Assembly: GCA_946965045.2 (NCBI GenBank)
Contig: OX337235.1
Coordinates: 868,001-932,000 of the forward strand
DNA length: 64,000 nt
Reading direction: 5' to 3'
Source: Epithemia pelagica
Taxonomy: Eukaryota > Protista > Bacillariophyta
Positions 1,581 through 53,170 of this stretch are shown one piece after another. The position numbers and the translations under genes are program-made. Position 1 is the first letter of the stretch, and the number at the start of each line of letters is the position of its first letter. The notes beneath the pieces were generated by a model. That model worked only from the letters and a program-made list of their open reading frames with translations, had not been told where the DNA came from and did not search any database.

Positions 1581-4500
1581 TCAAACATATTGGATTTGAT
1601 ACATGCGAATGTGCTTGCGCATGGCCCATCCAAAGCGTAACGCACTAAACGCATAGAGCATCAAAATGGCTGCCAAAGACGCACTGCTCTTGGCTTGTGT
1701 TTGAATCACTTTGGTGACATCGGATACGGTCCACTCCGGACAGCGATTCGGATCTCCTTGCGGCAAATCGCAATTTGTACAACTTGCCGCTTGATCGAGA
1801 AAGCAAGCCAAGTCACCTCGTTGAGAATCCGTCAAGGGAATGTCGACAAAGGACGAGGAAAAGGCAACACTGGCCGCAAACAGGGCAATCAACGAGGCCA
1901 CAATCAACGTCATGAGAATGATAAAGCAGACGATACAAATTAGTTTGTTGCGTTTGTGTCGCGTATTGGTAATGGAACTAACAGAAATGTACCATCCCAA
2001 CAAGGCCGCCATCAAAAACAAACCCGCCGTGGCCATGTATAGAGGTCCAATCCAGTTCCCATCCGTGTCCGATCGAGCACTCAAACCGGAGGTTTCGGCA
2101 TAGGTGTAAACCAATCCGAAAATGATACAGGAGACGATGGGCAAACTCAACCAGGCTGGAACGTTGGACTGACGAGATTTTCGTACCAGTGGTTTCGAGA
2201 TGATTCCCTCCAACGTGTTAACCACCAGAAACAGCTACAAATGACAAAGAAACATATACCGAAAGGACGTTGAGTGGGCAATCCTCAACTGGTAGCTCTA
2301 GACTCAAGCCAGTAATGACGCTCATCGTCTTTCACCATCACACTTTCGATACGTACCAGACAAATGAGAACTAGACCCCAAGACGCGTTGGTGTAATAAA
2401 ATACGAGCAAAAATGATTCCGTGTCCTGTTTTCCAGACATTAATTTGCCCAAACATGGTTAGAGTGCACGAGTCGAGTCAAGCTGGTGGTGAAGCAAGAT
2501 GTTTGTGTGTACTTGTTGCGCCTTGTTTCGAATTGCCGAGCAGCTACACGAACCATTCGTCATACAAGGCACCCGGGGGTACAGGCGGATGGTAAGAACA
2601 TACACAAGATGAGACAAGACCGAAAAATGGATGGATAATTTGTGCAAGATACGTACCTTGTCGCATTGTAGTAGGTCAAGCACCATTCGGTTTCATTGAC
2701 GCCCAATGGAACGGTGCAAAGTGTATTGGCTGTAAAGGCCGGTTTGCAATACTTTTCGCGGAACCAACTACATCATCATCCAGTGGAAGGTATACAAGCA
2801 GGGCAAGCAAGGCACAACAAGAGACAAATAAGACGAAATGACAGTTTGGCATGTTTCATACGTCCCACCACCAAATGGCGACACCTACCCCATGGTCTCG
2901 TCCCGCCAATAATGTCGTACCCAGACGTCCGTGACCTGACAATCCATGAACCAAAGTTTAAATATAATATGTGAGTCAACCACGTTCTTGTGTTGGATGC
3001 CACAAGCTCAATAGGATACGTACCCGAAAGTAATCGTACAAGCCAATATTGAAAAATATTTGAAAGGGAAGGATCCATCTGCCGCCAGAAACAAAAACAC
3101 AAAAAACCGACTGTGAGAAGATCACTGCACCAACCATTGACACTCGGTATGCACATGTCGGTTCGACAGTGACGACGACTCGTGTGGCCCACGGTTACAC
3201 GTCTACTCTATTGGATACGTACAAGAGGACCCAGAGGTACCGAATGGCCCCGACCAAATTGACATTGCGTACTACCCGGACAGTCATGAGGGCTGCCATG
3301 ACCAAAATAAAGGCTTCGACACCCAAGAGTGTCACGTGAATGCCAATGTTCCAAATATTGACATTTTTGCTCCCCCCTCCCAACCACCCTCGTCGTTGTT
3401 CTTCCTGTTCTTCACTGAATACGACCAGTGTGTCATTGGTATCGTCTAAGAAGTCGTCCGTGTCGTCCGTTTCGGTTGTCGTGGTGGTCGTCATTGGCAT
3501 GATGGCCACCGTCTCGTCGTCCACGACCAGTGTCGTGTTGGAGCTACCGGTTTGGACGACGCGTGTATTGGGTGTCAAGGTGACAATGGTAAAAAAGAGC
3601 GCCGCGGCAATTTGCATCAAGGCAAAGACTCCCACCAAGACATTGAGACGAGCCAAAATGGCTCGATCCGTTGGTCGTCGTCGTCGCATCGCCCATTGGT
3701 TGCTCCGTTCACTGGCTCGAAGACCGCGTGTATTGGTATTATTGGCATTGGCGTTATTGTGATGCCCCCCTCCCTTGGTTTGAGAGCTACTGCTTTGGGC
3801 GGTGCAAAAGCAGAGGACATCCCCCAGACTGGTCAAGCCATACCAGACCCAAAAACAAGGAGCATAAATCACAACAAAGGTACTGATTTGATGCATGGTG
3901 AGACGACATTTCTTGCGTTTGGTACCCTTGTGATAATAGGAGGACGACTCATTATCATCATCGTCGTCGTCGTCGGGTCCAGGACCGTCCTCCTCTTCCT
4001 CATCATCATCGTGTTCGTCCCAACTCTCATTGGCCACGGAATCGTCCAGTCCTGTAGCATGAGGTGTCACACCTGGTGCTAGAATACGACTGGGGGGAGC
4101 ACCCAATTGGTCCAGGTCCTCGTCGTCATCATCATCATAATTCGCCATGGCCGAGTCGGGGGTGGGCAATCCACCAAAGTCCAAGGAAGAATCCTCGTCG
4201 TCGTTGGTGTCTTGCGTATTGTCCTCCTTGTCATCCGGCAAGCTATTGTACGATTCAATATTGAAAATCATGGGGTCATCGTCTGGATCGTCGTCCATGA
4301 TTCGAGGAGTAGGAGTTGTGGTGGTTGGTTCCTCGGAACCCGACTGCAACCATCGCGCCATGGTCATGGCCGTGACAGCGGTGGGTGCCACGGCTGATAC
4401 TACTACAGTGTCTTGTTCATCCTTTTTTTCATCTCTGGTCAATTGGTCGTCGTCATGGTGCGATTCGTCTTTGACAGGACCAGGAAGATGCTCCTCGACA

Positions 4501-7899: not shown

Positions 7900-10800
7900 A
7901 AAGACCAATCAACGAACTCTACATCCAATGCAGTTTGGTGGAGTACCAGGCAGAGACGCTGTTATCCCGACTTTATGCGAAGAACTCCAATACGAAATAT
8001 CAAGAGCTAGCAAGCGGCCACTTGTCCATCTGGACTATGATGCCACCGCTTGCTACGACCGGATCGTCTTATCCTTTGGCAGCCTTGCGTCTAGAAGCTT
8101 TGGTCAACACAGATCAATCGTCTTTATCAACGCATAGACACTTGAAGAAGCAAAGTATTACTTAAAGACACAACTCAGAGTGTCCGAACGGCATTATCAA
8201 CACTGCCAGTTGTACCCTATATACGGCTCAGGACAAGGCGCAGGCAACTCACCTGCAATTTGGTGTGTCATATCAACAATTCTTTTTGACACATACGAAG
8301 ATAAAGCACATGGTGCTACATTCAGCAGCCCTGATGGCTCTGTGAAAACTGCCGTGCACATGATCGGTTTTGTGGATGACACTAGCGGTAGTATCAACGA
8401 CTTCTCGCGAGATCACCCCGCATCGCCTGAACACTATATCGCCAAGGCACAGGAAGATGCACAACGATGGAATGACCTGCTTAGTCTGTCTGGTGGGGCG
8501 CTCAATGTTGAGAAATGCTCCTATCACTTTCTCTACTACACGTTCAATGTGGATGGACTCGCATCTTTGCAATCCGGTTCGTTTGGCCCCCAGATCACAA
8601 TCCACTTTCATGATACAGAACATTCAACACCAATAAAACAGCTTTCCTCTTATCGGAGTCACAAAACGCTGGGCGTGCAGAAATCACCACACCGTACAGA
8701 CAAAGGATTGTACATTGCTCTTGCGAAGAAGAATGCTGCTCATACCTCGGTCATGGCTACTAGTCCTTTCTCAAGAACAGATGCGTGGGCCTACTACCAT
8801 GCTATCTATCTCCCTAGCATATGCTACCCGTTACCGTCATCCACTCTCTCCGACGCTCACTGCAATGCTCTACAGATCCAGTTCAAGAAGGCATTTCTAC
8901 CAAAGTATGGCTTCAATCGCCACATGCCAAACGCAGTTGTTTACGGTCCGACTGAATTAGGGGGGATTGGACTACGCACACTCTCAGTGGAGCGCGGCAT
9001 CTCCCAGACTTACTTACTAATGGCATGTCTCCGATCTCCGGGAGTTCCAGCACAACTTGCTCAGATTGCCATCTCTTGGGCCCAGTTTCTCGCCGGAACC
9101 AGTATCTCAATTTTCGAAGACGTTTCGACGCCTCTACCACATTTGGTTCCAATGCAATGGATCCCCCAAGTTCGAAATTTCCTTAAAACAACAGACTGCA
9201 GATTAGAACTGGAAACAAAGTTTCTTCCTACACCTCAACGTGACAATGATCGGTGTCTCATGGACATTGCGGTTGAATCTACCCAATTCACTCCAACCGA
9301 ACTGGTTCTACTCAACGCATGTCGCATATACCTCGGAGTTACACTGCTCAGCGATATTTCAACCCCAGACGGCACGAACCTCTCCTTATTCGCAATCAAC
9401 CATTGCCACGACGATTTTTCAACTCACCGCGGTCTTATCCCATACCAAGATCGACCAGGCTCCCGTGCTTGGAACCAATGGAACAAATTCCTCGACCTCG
9501 TTCGACAGACAGGAGTTACCCGCTTGCTGATTACACCTCTTGGGTCATGGACTGTCCAAGGGCACAAATTACACCGTTGTTGGAAATATCTTGTTGACTG
9601 CCCGAGCTCGAAGCTTTATGTGTATGAACCCACTGGCAACTTTCGTCATTACTGGTACCAACACCCACTGTTTCTACCGACGTCCCAACTCTCTTCATGT
9701 GTGCCACCCACAGCAGTGCCTGTTCATGTTAATCAGTCTGGACCTGCATTTTTCATCCTACCTTGCCGTCCTCAAGTACTCACTCCGGAATCACCTCAAC
9801 CACAGACTTTCACCGACTACGTTGCCACTCTCGCACAATGGGATCAACATCTTGTATCCAAGCTTGTACTCTCCTGCTCGCCAGCACAGATTCAATCTAC
9901 TTTCACTACACCGACTGTTCGCCTCTTCTTGTGCAGTGATGGTTCAGCAGCTATGTTCACCGGCAAATTTGGTTGTGTTTGTAGTACCGATTCAGGAGAA
10001 TGACTTTTTCATCTTCATGGACCCGCTCCCGGCTACCGTACTTCTTCATTCCGATCAGAGAGTTATGGAATGCTTGCTTTGCTCCGTGCAGTAATCCATA
10101 TCACGACATCGTATGGTTTCAGTCTGCCTACTCAGCTGATTTTCTATACGGATTCCAAAAGTTTGATCAATACTGTGGAAAAACGACTAGACTGGTCCTA
10201 TGACTTCCCGTACTCAACTATGGAAGCTGATTGGGATATCCAGCAAGGCATAAGCACATCCCTCCGCCAATTCCCTGAGATCCCCAGATTTCTACATGTC
10301 CGAGGCCACCAAGACCGCTTGCGACCATATGCTACACTACCCCTTGCCGCTCAGCTTAACGTTGACGCCGACCGACTAGCTGACTCATATGAGTATCCTT
10401 CTTCCATCTCATCGACACATGCCCCCCTCATCACCGGTGGCCAAGCTCTACTTCATTCCCCCAAAGGAACTATCAATTCCAATTATCGGTCCAATCTACG
10501 ATATCTAGCAACCTGGAAAACTCTACGGCAGTATCTATGCAACCGAAACGAGTGGTCATTCGAAACCTTCGAGTCGATCGACTGGACATCCCATGGCCGT
10601 GCCATCAAGGCCATTTTCACCCGCCGACAATTCTACATTAAATTTCTCCATGATTGGCTCCCTCTTGGTTATCTCCGTTCCCGTTATGCAACCTATTACA
10701 CGGAAACATGCCCCCTTTGCAACCCACCAGTTATTGAGACTCGTACTCATTTCCTTTGTTGTCCACACCGCCACTGGAAAGGACCCTTACTCGAAGAATT

Positions 10801-41475: not shown

Positions 41476-42329
41476 GAGATTGGTGTGGGTTCTGGAGGGA
41501 GGAACGAGTTCGTAGTACCTAAAAAGAGAAGAGGGAATCTCAGACTCTGACCTCTCCACTCGAGAGAAAGAGAATACTTCGAATCCGACGACACGATGGC
41601 ACACCCTGTGGTCGCTCGCTGGCTGCCAGTGATGGTCCACAAAAAGATACCACATGTTCCGTGGCCTTGAGGCCGTTCCTTGATATTCTGCAAAAACAAA
41701 AGTTGGAGGGTGACACGTCACAAAAAACCCGGAAATATGGCGTCAAATCCGGGTTCGACGCTGTTTCAGCTTTTGAGGCTGCAAAAGTTGGGTCCAACTT
41801 TTGCAGGCCGGCAAAAGCTGAACAGACATTAGGGATAGTGCTTTCTTTTTGCTAGTGTACATTGGGCCTACAGAAACAAAAATGACGGTTTAGGATTTTT
41901 GGAACGGCGCGCGTTCGACTCCAACGGTCCCCCTAACCTCAATGAAGAGGAAGACGGAACGTCCTCCTAATGTCTTACTTTGATAATTGTAGTATTCAAA
42001 TCATCAAAGTGAATATGGGGACTATTGGGGGCCTTGGGGGAAAAAGTGCGGTTATAGGTTTTGGTTTTGTAAATGCCAAAGGACGGCGTGTCGCGCAATT
42101 GTCTACAAAAAGGTGATGTCATGTGTCGATTTTTGTTTTTGCAGAATATCAAGGAACGGCCTGAAGGGCCCCCCTCCCAAGATCTTAGAAGTGGGGCTCT
42201 GGAAGGACTATACTCTGAATAGTGTGTGCATAATGCTCTCCTCTACCCCACTCACATTTTGCCGGTGACACCACACGCACCGCCGTTGTTGCTGTGCTGC
42301 CACTCTATCATCGGCATCCAGCAGCAACA

Positions 42330-43444: not shown

Positions 43445-44224
43445 CGACACACCACAAGAACCTGGTCTCTCTCTCTCTCTCTTGGAGCAACGGACTGTGC
43501 ACACCATCCGACGGACGGTTGGTTCCTCCACACACACACACTTTTGCGTGCGTGCCGTGTAGAATATAGTACCGAGCAGCAACCACCACTGACACACACG
43601 CCAGAGCGAACATGGAGAAAGAACACATCATGAAGGAACGCCCCAAACTCTCTCTCTCTCTCTCAAAGAGAGTGAATCGACTCTTAGGATAAAACATGCT
43701 ACTGACTAGGAATGTATATTGAAGATGCCGCAATGTTGGTTTCTCTCTCTCGATCTCAAATCGACAAGAAGAGAGAGAATTGCCGAGAGCGATTCATACA
43801 CTAGACGCATGCTCTATAGTATCATTGGATGCAATGATAGCGACATGAAGAACGTCGTGATAGTAGATTTCAAGGTGTTATGGTCGTGATGATCGCGACT
43901 TTCTGTATGTAGACGCGTTTGGGTCGCTTTTCAAGCCGTTTGGTTGGTCGTCGTCGATCCCAGTGTCGTCGATGGAAGAAAGGACAGCAACACGCAACAG
44001 ACTGGAGAGGGAAGAAAGAATTGCACCAGATTGCATGGCAACCGAGCGAGAGAGAAAAAAAGAGGAGCACCAGATACGACGACAAGAGAGCTCCTATTCT
44101 CGGAATAGGACATGACCCCTCCGACGAACAACAACAAGCTTCTTCTTGTGGGACTCCTCGACGGTGTCGACGACGCGACCAGAACAACGAAAACGAAGAG
44201 GCAGTTTCTTGCCAACACGACGAC

Positions 44225-45157
44225 ATGACTGGCACAACAAGCATTTCGTCCCGAACCACCAAGATTCCCAAACTCGACAGCGACAACAACAACAACAACA
44301 ACCCGAATGGATCCAACCACAACGACCCTCACGAAGATAACAAGACTGTGAAACACAACAACAACGACGAGCCTCCTTCCCAAACAGCAAGTTCCCTATC
44401 GCTGGATCCATCTCCGACAACAAGTACAACAACAACAGCAGAACAACAGCAAGAACAACCGCAACGACCAACCGAATTGCATGTTTTGGAATTCTTTTCG
44501 GGCATTGGAGGAATGCGATGTGCCTTGGAACAAGCCTTGACTCAAATGTCCTTGTCCTCCCATCCATCTTCTTCGTCGTCGTCGCCGTCCCAATCGACAC
44601 TACTTTCCTTGGCTTCGTGTCATGCCTATGACATTTCCTTGCATGCCAATCAGGTGTATCGGCAAAATTTTGACAGTGTCACATGCCACACCAAGAAACA
44701 CCACTCCAAGAAAAAATCCTCCTCGTCCTCCTCGTCCAACTTGTTTACGGTATCGACCAAATTGGTGGAACAATTGTCCGTTTCCGACCTTGCCGCTTGC
44801 CATGGTACAATGTGGACCCTGTCTCCTCCCTGTCAACCCTTTACCAATACACGATTTGCCAAACAGGCCGATGTCGACGACAAACGCAACAAGGGCTTGT
44901 GGCACTTGTTTGGTCACGTGTTGCCCCACTTGCCACCACAACACAAACCGTATTGGATTGTGTTGGAAAATGTCCAAGGCTTTGCCACCAGTCGCATGCG
45001 GCACCTCGTCTTGGACCGTTTGGCACACTGCCAATGTTATAGTTGGACCGAAGTCTTGCTGTCCCCCCACAAACATTGTGGCATTCCCAATCATCGGACA
45101 CGTTACTATCTCGTGGTGGAAGCCTCGGATCGATTTTTTGATCGAGCCGCCGCCTCG

Positions 45158-45191
<34 letters not shown>

Positions 45192-46210
45192 AACCATCCA
45201 TACCACCAACCACATTCATATCACCACCACCACTTGGACCCGCAGTGCCGGAACCAAACCACGAGAACCATGGCAACGACAAGGACGACGACCACAACAA
45301 CAAGGACTGGACCGCCACCACCACCACTCTGCACACGAGTCTTCCACCTGGTCCCTGGAACTCGCACCGCCACGAGTCCCACGGTCGTCGTCGTTGCATT
45401 GGCGAGTATTTGGATGACGTTGTGGATTGGACCGTCTTTGGCTTGTCCCACAACGTGTTGCAGCAAGACTGGGTGACACATGGCCATGGATTGCCCGTCG
45501 TGACACCCACCGATACCCAGTCGCATTGTTTTACCGCCTTTTATAGCCGACACATTCATGCCAGTACCGGAAGTGTCGTGTGGATCGGTCCCAACCACCA
45601 CAATCACCACAATACCAAGGCCGCGCCCGAGGAACACGCTCCAACCACCACAACAACGACACGCCACGCCGACCAAACCCACCACCACCAACAACAACAA
45701 CAACCACAAGGTTCCACCGACACCAATCACCACGACAATCCTCTCTGGACGAAGAAGAAGAATACCGAGCAGGACGATGATTCCCAGTCCCCCGACCGGC
45801 AACACACACCAGCTAGTACCACAACAACAACAACAACCACCACTCGATTATTGGATCGGTCCAACATGGGACACTACGAGGGACAAATTCGAAAATTTAC
45901 ACCCACTGAACTCTTGAGACTGTTTGGATTTCCATCCACGTGGTTGGATGATGATGATGATAAGGATCCAGAACTACTAAACACGACAGTGGACAAGGAC
46001 GGTACTACCCAACCAGATGCACCCAACAACAACAACAACAAGACCACAAAAGGCGCTCCTACTACTACATCCTTACGGTTGCAAACCAAATACAAGTTGA
46101 TTGGCAATTCCATTAATGTCACAGTCGTGTCCATGTTGTTTCACTTTCTCTTGTCACCCGAGGCGGCGGCACCAACAACAACAACAACATCCGTGTGTAC
46201 CACCAAGTAA
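44225..46210 (+). CDS. DNMT2: DNMT2/TRDMT1-type cytosine-C5 methyltransferase
   Basis: Motif I VLEFFSGIGG, IV SPPCQPFT, VI LENVQGF, VIII GIPNHRTRYY, DNMT2-type CFTAFYSRH, IX RKFTPTELLRLFGFP, X KLIGNSINVTVV. First in-frame ATG at 44225; the frame is open from 43919. Confidence 0.9.
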
Positions 46211-46483
46211 TAGGTGCGGAGGCTTGCGTGCCAACAGGACCAACCCAAGAGACTTGTGGTGTGTAGCCCTTGTACGGCACGGCGCCTACTACAGAAGGAG
46301 CTACAATACCGGACAGCCCGCCCGATTCCTCGACCCAACCGTCTTGCTTCCCATACCTCTTGGGTGCCCAATCTTTTGGCGATGTCTAGTGATGAAGCGG
46401 AATCCAATGGTTATTCCGCTGCAATCTCATGATTGAGATTTCCGTTCCAAGCAATTGCGAAATCATATATTCATGTCGAAACG

Positions 46484-48160
46484 TTAGACACCCAATACAC
46501 TTGTGATCGCCCGATGCCAGTCCTTGTCCTCGGGGAATGCCACAAAGATCCGTGTATTTGCCCACATTGTGCCAACTTCAGGGCCTGTCATGAGTTCATT
46601 CTTGTTGCTGTCCAAAATGGGTTTGCTTGGGTCTTCACCCTTTGCAAGATAGTTGTTTCTGGGGCGGCCTGCATACGTATCTGTATAGTTAGGATTCACA
46701 AAGCAAATGTTGAGAGTCTGTGTAATTAAGAGACCCAACATGTCCCGAAATAATCGCAAAGTGCCAAGCTTGAACGCAGGATCCCTCTGCCACGTGGTCT
46801 GAAACGCAAAGTGAACACCTTGAATTACCAAGACACAGTCCGCAAGAGGATAGCTTTTGTCGATCGGATAGTTGACCAGGGCAGGGTTAAACATGTCGTC
46901 GCGAGTGACTTTTCGCTTCGAATGTCCTGCTAGGCCCTTTAAGCTCGTATCAGGCTCGCCTGGAACTCCTTGGTACTGCCATCTCACCTTCCTTGGCCCG
47001 GCTGACAGCATGTGAACAACAGATGCTTCGAGGTCCAATCCCGAAGGATCTCCGGATTTGTTGTTTAGGACCTTTGGCAACATTCGGAGATGGTCCAAGG
47101 GAGATGCGAGGGTCATCTTTTCTGTCACTCTCTGCCGCACATGGTGGCTCGTCAAGGTAAGACTCGGTGCCTTGAAAGGCGCATCTCCATCCGTCGGAAT
47201 ATCAGTGTAACAACAGACGAAACCACTTATATTATCTTGTCTTGCATCCTGATGGTCGTCAATCTGAGCTGCAATGGAACGCAGAGTCTCCGCAGTGACA
47301 TGATTGCACTTGGCGTCCACCTCTTTCTGTTTGATTTCACGGTCCTTGTCCGTTTGAAACAACAAGGACCATTGGAAAATCCCTCCGAAAACCTCAAAAT
47401 TTCGTTCCAGAACTCCCAAATCCAACTTCTCTTCCTCCGCAATGTACTCCATTTCGTTGTATTCCCCAACAGGCATGTACAACTCATGTGGATGTGATTT
47501 CCGGTATTCGTGGATTCGGTCCTTGCGCGGTGACAGCGTGGACAAACTTGGGGCCTCTACAAACAGCGGTGGTTGGTGGACCATCGCAGCCGGCTCATAC
47601 AAGTAAAGAATGTTGCCATGGCCACTCAAGAGCATTTCGACATACGCCTTCGTACCCTTCAAAGCAAAACCCTCACACGTATCCAAGTCCAGGAGGGAGA
47701 AGTTCTCCCCAACCATGCGGATCACAAATCGGAAGATCCGCTTCTTTGTTTCCGACAAGAGGCGACGCACAAGATATACTTGAAACCAGGACTTTCCAGT
47801 ACCAGCGTTACCCGACAGAATAATCTTGGTCCTCTTGGTATTTTGTTCGTCTTGCCATATTTGAATCATCTCATCGTACAAGCGGCTGTAGAAGCCACGC
47901 TCAAAGTAAATGTTCGAAGTTCTCTTGATGAGGTTGAAAACCTTTGGTCTTGGATAGTTCTCCAGTGAGAAGAGAGTGATCCCACAGGTCGCTGGTTGCT
48001 GCTTGGGGACCAGTGTCTTCCAGAACCGCAATTCCTCAGACAGAGGCTCTGATTTATCTACCTCGAGCCTATCCAACGCCTCGGCCACATCCCCGGGGTA
48101 CTGGCAATTGGATCGCAATGCATCTCGCACCGACTTTTGGCTTGGGACATGTACATCCAT
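46484..48160 (-). CDS. Crinkler (CRN)/RHS-type P-loop NTPase plus restriction-endonuclease-fold protein
   Basis: IYFERGFYSRLY, Walker A ILSGNAGTGKS, Walker-B-like LYLYEP, SPRKDRIHEYRK, LYMPV, FEVFGG; C-terminal GLDLE..H and YPLADCVLV..FAFQTT (D..QxT). Single exon; start at 48160 or 48274. Confidence 0.75.
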   Translation of the reverse strand: MDVHVPSQKSVRDALRSNCQYPGDVAEALDRLEVDKSEPLSEELRFWKTLVPKQQPATCGITLFSLENYPRPKVFNLIKRTSNIYFERGFYSRLYDEMIQIWQDEQNTKRTKIILSGNAGTGKSWFQVYLVRRLLSETKKRIFRFVIRMVGENFSLLDLDTCEGFALKGTKAYVEMLLSGHGNILYLYEPAAMVHQPPLFVEAPSLSTLSPRKDRIHEYRKSHPHELYMPVGEYNEMEYIAEEEKLDLGVLERNFEVFGGIFQWSLLFQTDKDREIKQKEVDAKCNHVTAETLRSIAAQIDDHQDARQDNISGFVCCYTDIPTDGDAPFKAPSLTLTSHHVRQRVTEKMTLASPLDHLRMLPKVLNNKSGDPSGLDLEASVVHMLSAGPRKVRWQYQGVPGEPDTSLKGLAGHSKRKVTRDDMFNPALVNYPIDKSYPLADCVLVIQGVHFAFQTTWQRDPAFKLGTLRLFRDMLGLLITQTLNICFVNPNYTDTYAGRPRNNYLAKGEDPSKPILDSNKNELMTGPEVGTMWANTRIFVAFPEDKDWHRAITSVLGV

Positions 48161-48495
48161 GGCAGCAGCATGACCGACATGGTGGACGAGGGGCTTGTGC
48201 TTGTGCTGTTTAGATTTTCGAGTGACGAGGGCATATGTTCGAGGAATACTCCAAATGAGACGAACTACCTGCATACTCTTGTAGCTATTGGAAAATAGGT
48301 AAGCTAGCCTGATAAGTCACAGTGTTAGTCACAGGGATGTTTTAGCATTCTGAACATGAACGTCGATATTGGAAAAGGTCACGGGGAAAAATGTATCAAG
48401 TGGGAGTTAGAACGCAAATTAATACCAACCCGATACGGATGGTTCCCGGTCCAGCATCGATTCGAAGCTCGTGAGTGAAAAAAGAACTGGTACCT

Positions 48496-48810
48496 AACCA
48501 GATGCACCCAACAACAAGAAAGAAGAAAGGCATTACTACAACAACTACTACATCCTTGCAGTTGCAATCCAAAGACAAGTTGATTGGCAATTCCATTAAT
48601 GTCACAGTCGTGTCCATGTTGTTTCACTTTCTCTTGTCACCAAAGGCGGCGGCAACAACATCCATGTCCATCCAGCAACTACTTGCCAGCAGGACGAATA
48701 ACCCAAGAGACTTGTGTGTAGTGATTGTACAGCATGGCTCTTTCTTTCCCGATACAAAACGGAGCCACAATAGCGGACAGACCGATTCCTCGACCCTTCC
48801 GTCTTGCTTC
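48496..48810 (+). pseudogene. Duplicated fragment of the DNMT2 3' end and downstream flank (copy of 46011-46350)
   Basis: 67 bp identical (46092-46158 = 48575-48641, encoding KLIGNSINVTVVSMLFHFLLSP). Diverged similarity runs from AACCAGATGCACCCAAC to GATTCCTCGACCC..CCGTCTTGCTTC. Confidence 0.9.
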
Positions 48811-48892: not shown

Positions 48893-51800
48893 TTACTTGA
48901 TTTCGAGTTTCATGGCCAAATTCATGGCGGCCAGTTCGTTAACCAAGTAACGGTACACATAGGGCATGATGATTGGCTCAATGGCTTCGTCATTGCCCGT
49001 GCCAGTCACCGCCTCGGTGGCTTGCCGACAGGCCGGATCTCGACAAATCAAGCGCAATCGTGGCTTGGACATGGCCTCGGTCACACTTTGACCCGTGGTT
49101 TGAATTTGACACCGTTCCGTCGTGGGCAACAACAAGTCACCACACCGAGAACACACATGGGCCACATGCTTGTCGCTGCAATTCATTAACCGATCCATCA
49201 ATAGGTAGGCCGCACCGTGACTCAACAGACTATCTCGTTCCATTTCTCCCAATCGGATACCACCGCCCTTTTTCCGACCCTTGATGGGTTGTCGAGTCAA
49301 TTGATTGGTTGGACCCGTCGCACGAACCTGATACTTGTCCGACACCATATGACGAAGACGTTGATAGTATACGACCCCAATGTACAAATCGGCATGCATG
49401 ACACACCCCGACACTCCACTGTACAAGGGCTCACTTCCATAGTAATTGTACCCCGCCGCCTGCAATTGTTCTCCAAAGTAATCAATCGATACCTTGTCAC
49501 TCGCCGTTTCGTGAAAGGAAAAGGGCGTACCGTTCTGGAAAAACCCATGCAAAGCACCCGCCTTGGCTGCCATGCTTTCCACCAGCATACCAATCGTCAT
49601 TCGACTGGGAAAGCCTATACATCATTCGGCAATCACCGTGTGTACACAAAGATACAAGGGTTGAGAACTAGAACGAAATAGAGTGTTGCATTGGATCAAC
49701 CAAGCGGTGCATATGTTCATTGGTCACGTACCGTGGGGGTTGAACAAAATGTCGGGAATCATGCCCGATTCGGTAAAGGGCATATCCTCCTGAGGCCACA
49801 GAATACTTAGCACACCCTTTTGTCCATGCCGGCTGGAAAATTTGTCACCAATAATGGGATTGCGAGGATATCTCAAGGTCAACGAAACCTTGTCTGCATC
49901 TTCTTGCGTGTTTTCACTTCCCAGTTTGCGTACACATTGTACATAGGCCACTTCCTTATCCTTGTGTTTGCCAATGGTTTTGGTTTCATTCGTCATGGGA
50001 TCCACGACGGCGTACAATGGATCGCCCTCAGTCACATATCCACCCACGGGTCGTAATCCATCTTCATCCAAATCATCGGCCAAGGAGCGCATTTTACTCT
50101 TGCCTCGATTGGAAAAGACCAGTCGTGCATCGGGGCCCATTCCACAATGTTTGGCCACATCTTTTAAATCCACATCGACAGTCTTGTACACGGCGGCATG
50201 ACCAAAGCCCCGTTCCACCGAGGACTTGTTGAGAATCATGGCATCCTCCATATCAAAGCCTGTATAACTCATGACGGCAATCACGGCATTGGTCCCATTG
50301 GGATATTCATCCATTTTGTATTGACCGTGAATGCTCGTTTGTACCACGGGTGCCTGGGGTGTCATGAGACGATACAATTTGTTGTCGGCTCGGTAGGGCA
50401 GGGAATGAGCCGGTGTTCCCATGGTCTGTTTGCCCATTTGACATTGGTACATGTTTCGTGGCGATTGATTTTGATCCGAAAAGGGTGTCAGGTTCGCAAT
50501 CAAACTCAACATGTTGGTTGGATCCAATTCTTGATGGGTCGTAATGCCTTCTCGAATATCTTCTTCCAAACAGGCAATGTCCATAAAGCCCTGTTCCAAC
50601 GGACCAATGTACTCGACTTTTCCGGATGCACGGTGCAAGACGGGTCGAATCAACCTCGCCGAACTGGTAAAGATAAACAAGCCCGGATAGGGTGCACCCT
50701 TGTTGCCCGGTGGAATCAGTGCCACTTCGGTAGTGGCTGGAATGCGACGACGAGGAGGAGAAGGACGACGACTGATATCTGGTGGCTGCTGTTGTTGTTG
50801 TTGTTGTTGTTGTTGTACCTTCAAGTCTCGTAACATGGCCATGATGCGTTTGCAATCCAAAGGACTGGCTCCTCCCACGACACGTCCATCGACACAGACC
50901 GACAAGTGCGTGTGAGGGGAAATGGTCCGTCCTCCCAGCACCGAAGCCGCACCCGTCGGTACAACACCCAATTCGTACAAGACTTGTTCGACTCGGACGC
51001 TGCCACGATTGTTGTCAAAGGTGTCGTCATTGTCATTGTCATGATTGTGGTTCGTTGGTGGGTCGTCCCCCATTACAGTCGCTGGATAGGACAAGACGGA
51101 ACTTTTCAATGCCAAATGACTGAGCAATCCACACGGTCCTCCATCGGGTGTATGGACGGGACACAAAAATCCCCATTGATCGGGCAAGAGTTTCCGGACG
51201 GCGGTCGTTTTCATTTCCATAAAGAATTGACCGCGATGGACGGATCGGAAATGAGAACAATACCGCAAAAAGTTGAGTCGTTCCGCGACAATGGTATATC
51301 CCGACACTTGCATCAAATCCAAACCCGTCGTCGAAACGATATTGCCCGTGGACAAGAAATGGGCCACCTTTTTGCCAATTCCACCCGACGATTTGTTGGA
51401 ATAGCGATCGACCAGTTTGCCAAAATACTCGGAGGTTTGCACTTTGCGACTGGCCATTTCAAAGTCTTTGCGAAGTTCCATGAGAATGCCCACTCGAACA
51501 TTTTCCAACATTTCTTCAAACTTTTCCTTGACAAAGGTGGAAAGCAAATGTCCGGGTAGCAAAATTTCTTGATTTTGCAAGGAATCGGCATTGTCCACTC
51601 CACAATCACCGGCCGCAAAGGCATAGAGTTTTCGAATCATGTGCAGTAGACATTCCAACTTGTCTCGATAATCTTGCACATGGATCATAATGTATCGACG
51701 AATCAGGTAATGGCCAATTTCCAAATCGGTCGTGGTTTCGGCCCGTTGACTCATGCGACGGAACCGAGCGCCCATATAGGCCAAACATTCCTCCGGAGAA

Positions 51801-53170
51801 TTCAAGTGCGTGTAACGGGCTCGCGCATCTTGCAACAACAACCCGGCACGGGCCACCAAAAAGGTATTCTTGTCATCGCCTTGGACAATCCGACGATACA
51901 ATTCTTGATCGGTAATGCCCATGCCATTGACAACCGGTGCCGATCCACCCGTGTTGGTGGTTGCCGTGCTACTACTCGAGGCAGCCGGAGTGCTGCCGCC
52001 TCCTCCACTACTAAGGGCTCGAACCAAGAGCACAACGGGAATCAAAAATTCTTGTTTGCGCGCGGTAAATCGCAGCGAGGCACCGCCCGTGGTCAAGTAA
52101 TGGACCGTATTGGTCATTGTGGATTGATCGCCCGTGTGTCGAGCACATTTCATGGCCACACCCAAATCGGTATAGGTCGGACCCCGATTCTTGTAATTGG
52201 ACCGTTGAATGGCCGTGGCATAATTCCGTCGCGGCACTTGCAACAATCGGACACAGCGTTCAATGCCATTGACGATAAAATAACCACCCATTTCATTTTG
52301 CTATACACCAAAACAAATATACACGGGGGAGAAGGTCGTACAACGACAACAACAACAACAACAAGCAAGCAAGCAAGACACCAAAAGACAAGAAAATAGA
52401 ACACATCCAATTGTGAGTGAAACCAGGAACGCAGACGGCATACGCTCCATACATACACACAAAACTACTAACTAACTAGTACTCACTTCTTCCTTGTACT
52501 GGACCAATTCGGTGGGTGTCGATTGATGCAAATGACAGGATTTGGACAAGACCATGATGGGCAAATCTCCAAATTCTCGAGGAATCCGCATCGTGGAACC
52601 CGGAAACTCGACCCCATTGCGGCGCTGGACCGTGGTGACACACACCATGCCACGCATGGTACCGGCATACATGAGACGACGTTCGCGACATTCGCGAGGC
52701 AACAAGCTGTTGGAATGACTATTCAAAGAGGAGGCTGTGGCGTTCTGATACATGGGTTTGGACACTCGAACGTTTTCCATCCAAAATCGAAGCACTGTTT
52801 GATCGGCCAATTTGGTCGTTGTCGTTGTGGTTCCTCCACTGGTCGTTGTGGTCGCTGGTTTGGCCAGGACCAATTCGGCTGGTTCCATATCTTGAATACC
52901 GGCCGACAATCCATGATCCAAAAAGTAATTAAACGATTCCACATGGGGTGCCGTCAATTGACGCAATTGTTCGACATCGGTCGTCTGGGGCAAATGGCCA
53001 CTGCGAAAGGACGGACAGGTTTCGACACCACGCTGTGGTTGTTGTTGTGGTCGTCGTCTTGAGGCGGCTTTGGGATCCTTCTTTTGTTGTTGTGGTTTGC
53101 GTTTGGAGGAGGACGATGAAGAACGAGTGACGCGACGAGTCGTCGTCGTCGTCGGAAGATTGTCAATCAT
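48893..53170 (-). CDS. RPA2: RNA polymerase I second-largest subunit; 3 exons, 1324 aa
   Basis: Model complement(join(48893..49614,49732..52300,52487..53170)), 3975 nt. RECRER, NEMGGYFIVNG, NQSPRNMYQCQMGKQTMG, GDKFSSRHGQKG, NPHGFPSRMT, GGIRLGEMERD. Confidence 0.95.

Follow-up and report, generated by a model that had tools for sequence, protein, structure and literature searches.

How did a gene for an NTPase with a nuclease-like domain come to lie between two direct copies of the tail of a housekeeping methyltransferase gene? In the window (the whole 64,000-nt stretch of Epithemia pelagica DNA analysed here), a first-pass annotation had placed this gene between DNMT2 and RPA2 and inside direct repeats of the DNMT2 3′ end, about 2.48 kb apart with a 67-nt identical core. 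Both descriptions hold: Pfam finds PF00145 to the left and Rpb2 domains with PF06883 to the right, and blastn recovers the repeat pair at E 2e-60 as the only two copies in the 60.5-Mb genome (genome-wide search). DNMT2 and RPA2 meet at a convergent junction, and the cassette sits there (Table 1). The DNMT2 open frame spans 43919–46210, with the first ATG upstream of motif I at 44225 and the stop codon at 46208–46210, and its C-terminal LRLQTKYKLIGNSINVTVVS motif is common to the orthologues P0173–P0175. RPA2 was read as two reading frames (48893–49600 and 49724–52291) with a presumed intron between them, and was scanned against Pfam frame by frame.

Table 1. Features at the DNMT2–RPA2 junction (window coordinates) and bracketing repeats at the seven superfamily loci that carry them.
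Feature	Positions	Strand	Description
DNMT2-type cytosine-5 methyltransferase gene	44225–46210	+	PF00145, E 1.1e-19; translation
T-left, left (putative target) copy	46006–46350	+	Functional copy; last 68 codons of DNMT2 and ~140 bp of 3′ flank
67-nt identical stretch	46092–46158	+	Equals 48575–48641; probable gene-conversion tract
Enclosed segment, presumed insert	46351–48490	−	2140 bp, by repeat boundaries
NTPase/nuclease-like gene	46484–48163	−	Intronless, 559 codons plus stop; open frame reaches 48274
T-right, right (putative target) copy	48491–48810	+	Decaying DNMT2-tail relic, without stop codon
RPA2, RNA polymerase I second-largest subunit, 3′ part	48893–52291	−	PF00562, PF04560, PF04565, PF06883, others
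Repeat, window locus			DNMT2 tail, ~345 bp; direct
Repeat, C6			58 nt, 98%, 1/58 sites differing; direct, two-copy, local
Repeat, C4			~75 nt; direct
Repeat, C16			~85 nt; direct
Repeat, C5	C5:1172927		~335 bp; direct, two-copy, local
Repeat, C11			~190 bp; direct, two-copy, local
Repeat, C18			~650 bp; direct, two-copy, local

The two copies of the DNMT2 tail lie on the same strand with their starts 2485 bp apart, and they align at 73.6% identity over 363 columns in blastn and at 82% per column in MAFFT. A core (46061–46177 and 48544–48660) is 94% identical and contains the 67-nt run, which ends at 46158 and 48641; outside this run, 15–32% of aligned sites differ. From the sequence, gene conversion between the copies is the probable source of the 67-nt identity. 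The left copy retains R, T and Y where DNMT2 orthologues are conserved, and the right copy has derived Q, S and D at DNMT2-conserved positions and has lost the stop codon. Substitutions between the copies in the core are nonsynonymous in five cases and synonymous in two, which together with the derived residues is as expected for a displaced duplicate. For these reasons and because of the lost stop codon, we rejected the idea that protein selection maintains the right copy as an alternative exon of DNMT2. The right-copy ORF, used as a query against a protein collection from which it is itself missing, returned the DNMT2 tails of the two assemblies and nothing more.

The presumed insert consists of the gene, 133 bp past its stop codon and 327 bp ahead of Met38, with nothing else coded, and its GC content (0.48–0.51) is similar to that of the flanks. 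Met38, at 48163, is the likely start codon, matching homologues. The protein carries a Walker A motif, GNAGTGKS, at ORF residues 155–162, in which G155, G158, G160, K161 and S162 are invariant among homologues. Its AlphaFold2 model (mean pLDDT 83.6) has a region of ~60–70 residues with short helices before the NTPase, and the NTPase itself matches Cdc6/Orc1, NLRs, CED-4/Apaf-1, DAP3 and TnsC at Z 8–9.3 over ~180–240 residues, with Foldseek returning NOD2 and CED-4. From this predicted structure, we confidently assign this domain as an AAA+/STAND-like P-loop NTPase. The nuclease-like domain (~425–596) has conserved D479, Q492, T494 and W495 and folds alone at pLDDT 66. Its best structural match is weak (Z 3.5), though at least 14 of the best 50 matches are REase-fold proteins, among them BglII, SdaI, Mus81-Eme1, XPF, NucS, FokI and MunI. 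The acidic-x-lysine motif is absent from the domain, the motif present being D479...Q492-x-T494 with the canonical lysine missing. The model weakly resembles restriction-endonuclease (PD-(D/E)xK) folds.

The annotation had called this a Crinkler/RHS-type NTPase-nuclease. Crinkler/RHS-type (CR) effectors are described as having a C-terminal module of NTPase, HTH and REase (Zhang et al. 2016, as reported in PMC5289972). The diatom protein has the same order, with its P-loop NTPase ahead of the nuclease-like domain, and likewise belongs to a multi-copy, fast-evolving family in a stramenopile; however, it lacks the Crinkler N-terminal header, a secretion signal and any match to PF07999 or PF20147, and its host is a free-living diatom rather than a pathogen. 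No family was matched in a Pfam search of the protein. For PF07999 (RHSP; gathering score 25 bits), the window protein has no match even at E 10, the 19 aligned homologues have none at E 1, and a six-frame search of the genome found none, as was also the case in control genomes; three of ten distant relatives score 18.5–19.2 bits (E ~1e-3), under the gathering cut-off. The Crinkler header PF20147 was likewise not found by Pfam in the protein or its 18 aligned homologues, and a profile search of PDB sequences gave no match. Protein-language-model neighbours do include clusters labelled Crinkler, RHSP and PF20147. Because no Pfam family matched, we use 'Crinkler/RHS-type' as a description of layout and not of family membership. 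Viral origin is unsupported, with no relative on IMG/VR contigs.

The ends of the insert define no element of a familiar kind, and here the annotation, which had seen no TIR, LTR or poly-A, proved accurate. The longest inverted match between the insert ends in the window is 6 nt, and no inverted bracketing pair occurs at any of the 24 superfamily loci, which rules out a transposon with terminal inverted repeats. The insert contains no poly-A, and retroposition was rejected since the insert 3′ end has none even at the youngest bracketed locus. An LTR-like reading was discarded because all repeats examined, those of the window, C6, C5, C11 and C18 loci (five of seven), are confined to their own locus. 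Four bracketed loci, together with the C7/C2 and C16/C1 units, have no terminal motif in common at their insert ends. A single simple tandem duplication at the window would leave a second copy of the gene; the gene is single copy in this genome, and the target-insert-target layout cannot come from that one event.

As a check, the annotation had proposed asking whether paralogues are each flanked by locus-specific direct repeats. They are at six further loci, spanning at least three other divergent subfamilies, but not at the remaining 17 of 24. In all, repeats bracket both sides of the gene at seven of the 24 loci, with lengths of 58–650 bp and scores of 36–446 bits, and every pair is direct; inverted pairs were found at none of the 24, with no score above 24.3 bits (hypergeometric one-sided p ~0.005). 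Besides this inverted-orientation test, the controls comprised gene-sized slots along the window: among 83 slots, the real one scores 176 bits and none of the other 82 exceeds 34.2 bits. Chance is excluded as the source of the window repeat. The recurrence of target-insert-target at six other loci, always direct, would tie the insertion mode to these genes, and the bracketing pattern points to an unusual mode of insertion. Taken as a sequence pattern, seven direct, no inverted and no control slots among 82 favours one of two routes, either insertion with a lengthy duplication of the target or a circle that integrated through homology.

The recurrence also bears on two other possible origins of the arrangement. 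In one, the annotation's own alternative, the DNMT2 3′ end was duplicated in tandem and an unrelated insertion later split or overwrote the duplication; in the other, an assembly artefact placed two haplotype tails in series. The divergence of the copies could resemble that of haplotypes, and another ENA record holds a 94%-identical version of the enclosed gene. The same layout at seven independent, unrelated loci is nevertheless left unexplained, and an insertion would have to land every time precisely where two tandem copies meet. As to an artefact, the sequence has no gaps and no N letters in the region or the window, the junction between the left DNMT2 tail and the insert cannot come from a haplotype switch, and the genome has just the one gene copy. 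An identical 596-aa ORF is present in an ENA assembly record. We regard both explanations as highly improbable.

Our preferred reading, which we hold to have an even chance of being right, is that a gene-sized insertion occurred at the DNMT2–RPA2 junction with a target duplication of ~345 bp, in a mode tied to the superfamily. The segment 46351–48490, with its one intronless gene, would have entered the convergent junction, and the ~345 bp target would have been copied in the same event through a widely staggered break with fill-in to either side of the insert. As an alternative route, a circle bearing a stretch of homology may have integrated by a single crossover. A long target duplication and circle integration had both been suggested in the annotation, and they fit the recurrence at seven of 24 loci, though they come without defined element ends. 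The DNMT2 C-terminus and stop codon would still be supplied by the left copy, and the right copy would have drifted as a relic, save for the 67-nt tract, probably kept identical by gene conversion. The event would be old. What we infer is an insertion of the gene, not its prior residence, through a staggered break or homology; on that view the superfamily genes would act as cassettes of low copy number, mobile or mobilised.

In the opposite order of events, the gene would have been a resident of the DNMT2–RPA2 interval before any duplication. An error of repair or replication at a fragile point beside it, by templated insertion or template switching, would then have pasted a 345 bp copy on its other side from 2.5 kb away, making these genes hotspots of local duplication and not mobile. 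The ages of the repeats are relevant here. At most bracketed loci the repeats appear much younger than the closest paralogue: at C6, for example, the repeats differ at 1 of 58 sites, and the gene aligns with other copies in short stretches only, where DNA identity is ~72–74%. No donor copy for the bracketed inserts is visible. Insertion at young repeats then needs cut-and-paste movement, loss of the donor or homogenisation of the repeats, and a resident gene needs no donor at all. The youngest dispersed copies also suit residence, being unbracketed. C7 and C2, the youngest inter-chromosomal pair (96.5% identity over 2.03 kb, dS 0.016, dN/dS ~2 on few changes), show no flanking duplication of at least 12 nt at either member, and C1, the partner of C16, has no flanking duplication; gene copying thus does not require duplication. 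Local duplication is real in one instance, a true tandem duplication at C5:1051339–1056483 with the layout host gene-gene-host gene-gene. Against residence, template switching yields both orientations and seven direct with no inverted pairs were seen; two precise switches would be required at each of seven unrelated loci; and without exception the copies on either side fall outside the transcription unit. We consider a resident gene possible but doubtful.

Insertion with a long target duplication, the preferred reading, could in principle be driven by the encoded protein itself. An autonomous transposon would have its own NTPase-nuclease nick positions 58–650 bp apart, paste the element in and leave very long target-site duplications of variable length. 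The recurrence is direct-only and confined to the superfamily, the insert is a single gene and nothing more, and absent donors suit cut-and-paste. The Tn7 ATPase TnsC is among the NTPase fold neighbours (Z 8.0–8.4), beside many other AAA+ proteins, and pairs of NTPase and REase are associated with transposable elements in prokaryotes, according to a review (PMC5289972). Conserved or inverted termini are missing, however, and duplications are absent at 17 of 24 loci and at the youngest copies. Copy number is low, with many copies decayed. Self-insertion by the encoded nuclease, which the annotation had put forward, is also at odds with the lack of the canonical lysine and a best fold match of Z 3.5. 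An autonomous transposon of this kind strikes us as quite improbable. Broader than this, the superfamily might represent a new type of single-gene mobile cassette that inserts, or integrates as a circle, with locus-specific flanking duplications of 58–650 bp and without terminal repeats or a transposase, integrase or reverse transcriptase of a known class; we put this forward tentatively, as rather unlikely. Stops or frame breaks were located at paralogues C4, C5:1173446 and others.

Known systems resemble the bracketed loci in part. Phages and ICEs that occupy tRNA or tmRNA genes also insert at a gene's 3′ end, where one copy of the tail keeps the gene intact, a displaced partial copy is found beyond the element and less similar arms surround an identical core. 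Such elements depend on an integrase of the tyrosine or serine type and enter at a fixed attachment site, whereas the diatom cassettes have no integrase, their targets are unrelated from locus to locus and the duplication varies between 58 and 650 bp. Eukaryotic transposons and LINE-mediated retrocopies share the local direct duplication flanking the insert. Known target-site duplications of DNA transposons have a fixed length of 2–20 bp, in contrast to the variable 58–650 bp here, and the diatom cassettes lack TIR, poly-A and reverse transcriptase or transposase domains. Templated insertions and duplications from break repair are likewise of variable length, reuse local sequence and need no specific ends. 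FoSTeS/MMBIR and paired-nick fill-in have no tie to a gene family and produce both orientations, unlike the family-specific, direct-only pattern seen in the diatom.

Descent of Crinkler/RHS-type NTPase-nuclease modules from selfish elements has been proposed on comparative grounds only. Seven loci with such a gene inside duplicated local DNA make that idea directly testable. If the repeats are target duplications, their length goes far beyond any known for eukaryotic transposons and would imply a break from two distant nicks or homology-driven integration. If the genes are instead resident duplication hotspots, they offer a model for conflict genes reshaping their neighbourhoods. One effect can be seen already: the neighbourhood retains partial duplicates of housekeeping genes, DNMT2 for example.

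Outside this genome, a relative with 32% identity lies on a 10-kb metagenome contig, the one usable contig, and has no bracket there. In the nearest relative, the DNMT2 tail (P0177) and the CR orthologue (P0001) are on one contig of 629,299 bp, and this nearest sequenced relative probably shares the insertion.

Repeat search, MAFFT and blastn agree on two direct copies enclosing the gene, and on a 67-nt identical run inside the repeat core, upholding the first-pass annotation on this point as well as on their identity with the 3′ end of the host DNMT2: the left copy forms the last part of an open frame of 763 codons that encodes a C-5 methyltransferase domain (PF00145, E 1e-19), and a DNMT2 relative is known from Epithemia. 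The copies align at 73.6% identity over 363 columns by blastn (E 2e-60) and at 82% per column by MAFFT, with identity varying along the repeat and a sharp loss of similarity at either end. They are the only two copies in the eukaryotic assembly (60.5 Mb, 23 contigs), and the window contains no N. To the right, the RNA polymerase I second-largest subunit was found as two minus-strand frames (scanned exon by exon, unjoined). Long low-complexity inserts (runs of N, T, Q, S and H; CAA-type repeats) separate the conserved methyltransferase motifs in the DNMT2 frame and swamped a word-based protein search. A 37-nt inverted repeat lies upstream of the DNMT2 region.

The sequence marks the right copy as a relic. 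Its frame can still be followed as ...KLIGNSINVTVVSMLFHFLLSP..., but without the stop codon, and comparison of the 39 codons of the core with the left copy gives five nonsynonymous and two synonymous changes. At three positions conserved among DNMT2 orthologues the left copy keeps the ancestral residue where the right copy has a derived one (R>Q, T>S, Y>D), the orthologue motif being LRLQTKY in P0173 and similar in P0174 and P0175. The 67-nt identical run would represent a gene-conversion tract, since drift would not spare 67 nt where the remaining repeat differs at about 15-30% of sites. The protein collection also contains an identical 596-aa ORF (P0169) and, on a 629,299-bp ENA contig, an orthologue 94% identical to the window protein (P0001). 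The C-terminal 114 residues of this relative's DNMT2 (P0177), identical to the window DNMT2 through the duplicated core, come from a contig of the same length, which probably means that the relative, too, has the gene linked to DNMT2. The repeat divergence suggests that the insertion or duplication event is older than the split from this relative.

The enclosed gene likely starts at Met38 (48163), as MDVD begins the homologues. A word search of the protein collection gave 26 relatives, almost all of them unnamed sequences out of ENA, JGI or Logan data (the nearest named one from a Bacillariaceae MAG), and among 1.84 billion representatives a profile search gave 2436 matches at E 1e-3 or better, pointing to a large yet unannotated superfamily. 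The Bacillariaceae match and the Epithemia DNMT2 relative together make a pennate diatom the probable source of the window. In an AlphaFold2 model from 19 sequences (mean pLDDT 83.6), residues ~64-390 resemble AAA+/STAND NTPases (Cdc6/Orc1, NLRs, CED-4/Apaf-1, DAP3, clamp loaders, TnsC) at Z 8-9.3, barely over the tool's stated noise level yet consistent across rows. The C-terminal 175 residues, modelled alone from six sequences, had pLDDT 66 and matched known structures at Z 3.5 at best; even so, of the 50 top structure rows at least 14 are restriction-endonuclease-fold proteins. Conserved residues in this domain are D479, Q492, T494 and W495; an acidic-x-lysine motif is absent, and a nuclease-like fold is plausible. 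The earlier label 'Crinkler/RHS-type' is fair as a name for the domain layout (as summarised in PMC5289972), given ESM Atlas neighbours in clusters named Crinkler, RHSP and PF20147 and sub-threshold PF07999 matches in three of ten distant relatives, but does not extend to family membership, Pfam returning only Walker-A noise for the window protein and aligned homologues.

Genome searches with the window protein, a profile and three distant members yielded ~24 usable superfamily loci in at least four subfamilies. For each, up to 2.3 kb of left flank was compared with up to 2.3 kb of right flank in direct and inverted orientation. The expectation that paralogues are flanked by locus-specific direct repeats held in part: 7 of 24 loci have a direct bracketing match well over background, and the rest, including those on C7 and C2, have none. 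The best single aligned block at the bracketed loci scores 36-446 bits, shuffled flanks reaching 28-30 bits at most, and nothing inverted exceeds 24.3 bits at any of the 24 loci (7/24 versus 0/24, one-sided hypergeometric p ~0.005). Among 83 gene-sized slots along the window, the real one alone stands out. Repeats were confined to their own locus in all five bracketed loci searched genome-wide. Upstream, 77-790 bp separate them from the start, and downstream, 133-1850 bp from the stop; between them lies essentially one transcription unit.

Coordinates of the repeats, genes and neighbouring features (window positions unless a contig, C, or excised stretch, L, is named)
Feature	Position	Length, identity	Start-to-start spacing
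Window repeat	46006-46350 / 48491-48810	345 bp	2485
First 55 bp, low-complexity CAA-rich		68%	
Core	46061-46177	94%	
Last coding bases		85%	
140 bp after stop		82%	
DNMT2 frame	44225-46210		
Enclosed ORF	46484-48274, minus strand		
Inverted repeat	41665-41701 / 42131-42167	97%, arms ~430 bp apart	
Bracketed locus	C6:1506875 / 1509409	58 nt, 57 identical, sharp edges	2534
Bracketed locus	C4:3312789 / 3315319	~75 nt	2530
Bracketed locus	C16:2355594 / 2359285	~85 nt	3691
Bracketed locus	C5:1172927 / 1175324	~335 bp, blocks at ~96%	~2400
Bracketed locus	C11:431018 / 434364	~190 bp	~3340
Bracketed locus	C18:524479 / 527594	~650 bp	~3100
Sequence in C18 left repeat	C18:524577-524640 (L059:156-219)	64 nt	
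Bracketed C5 copy	C5:1173446-1175140 (L036:1501-3195)		
Direct pair beside C16 paralogue	L014:7858-7923 / 9667-9728	66 nt, 92%	1.8 kb apart
Adjoining inverted repeat	L014:9572-9666 / 9736-9830	95 nt, 92%	
Tandem duplication	C5:1051339-1056483		
Duplicated units, host ORF plus superfamily gene	C5:1045339-1058010 (L017 + L027)		
C7 / C2 genes	L012:6001-7728 / L013:6001-7692		
C7 segment	C7:1279279-1279874 (L012:5194-5789)	596 bp	
Microbial-mat ORFs	L019:383-2107 (-) / 2634-4313 (+)		
Microbial-mat inverted repeat	L019:4743-5150	38 nt	

Three of these loci have features of their own. The 64-nt sequence in the C18 left repeat is absent from the right copy and recurs at 40 or more further genome sites (92-98% identity, both strands); its appearance is that of a tiny dispersed element, present in many copies, which inserted after the duplication. 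The in-frame stops in the bracketed C5 copy, a member of another subfamily, number four and are TGA throughout, a pattern compatible with C-to-T decay of CGA codons. The second repeat pair beside the C16 paralogue, with its adjoining inverted repeat, may mark a further small insertion.

One simple tandem duplication cannot produce a target-insert-target layout that lacks a second gene copy. Such a layout requires insertion with target duplication, integration of a circle bearing a homologous stretch, or the pasting of a target copy beyond a gene that was already resident. Because the repeats are strictly direct at all seven loci, the first two are favoured, template-switch repair being expected to yield inverted copies as well. 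We give insertion with a long target duplication, the best explanation, about an even chance. Its main rival, a resident gene acting as a hotspot of later local duplication, seems rather unlikely: the true tandem duplication on C5 shows that ordinary local duplication acts on the superfamily too, but template switching should have given both orientations, and seven direct and no inverted cases were seen. The unit duplicated there comprises a 557-codon host ORF and a superfamily gene; its first occurrence carries a truncated superfamily gene and a host ORF copy from which 1.2 kb has been deleted internally.

That the cassette moves autonomously by means of the nuclease-like domain it encodes is, in our view, improbable and a minority reading. 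Insert ends at the loci compared have nothing in common, and carry neither inverted repeats nor poly-A. The youngest dispersed pair, C7/C2 (a 2.03-kb unit, 96.5% identity, dS 0.016), lacks a flanking duplication at both loci, as does C1, the partner of C16 (dS 0.195). In most of the bracketed cases, the repeats seem much younger than the divergence of the gene from its nearest paralogue: those at C6 differ at a single site around a gene without a close copy, and the window repeat has a distance of ~0.2 versus a dS of 0.52 to C7/C2. Copy-and-paste from an extant donor is thus excluded, leaving cut-and-paste, loss of the donor, homogenisation of the repeats, or duplication next to a gene already resident as possible accounts.

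It also counts against a self-moving element that no viral contig carried a relative and that the one metagenomic relative examined has no bracket. On its microbial-mat metagenome contig (L019), this 559-codon relative and a 574-codon ORF of similar size are divergent neighbours, with an inverted-repeat pair downstream. The C7 segment, which abuts the 3′ boundary of the unit shared with C2, has 45-nt terminal inverted repeats (91% complementary) and looks like a MITE. Between the C7 and C2 genes dN is 0.033, giving a ratio of ~2 from small counts, which hints at diversifying selection like that of conflict genes.
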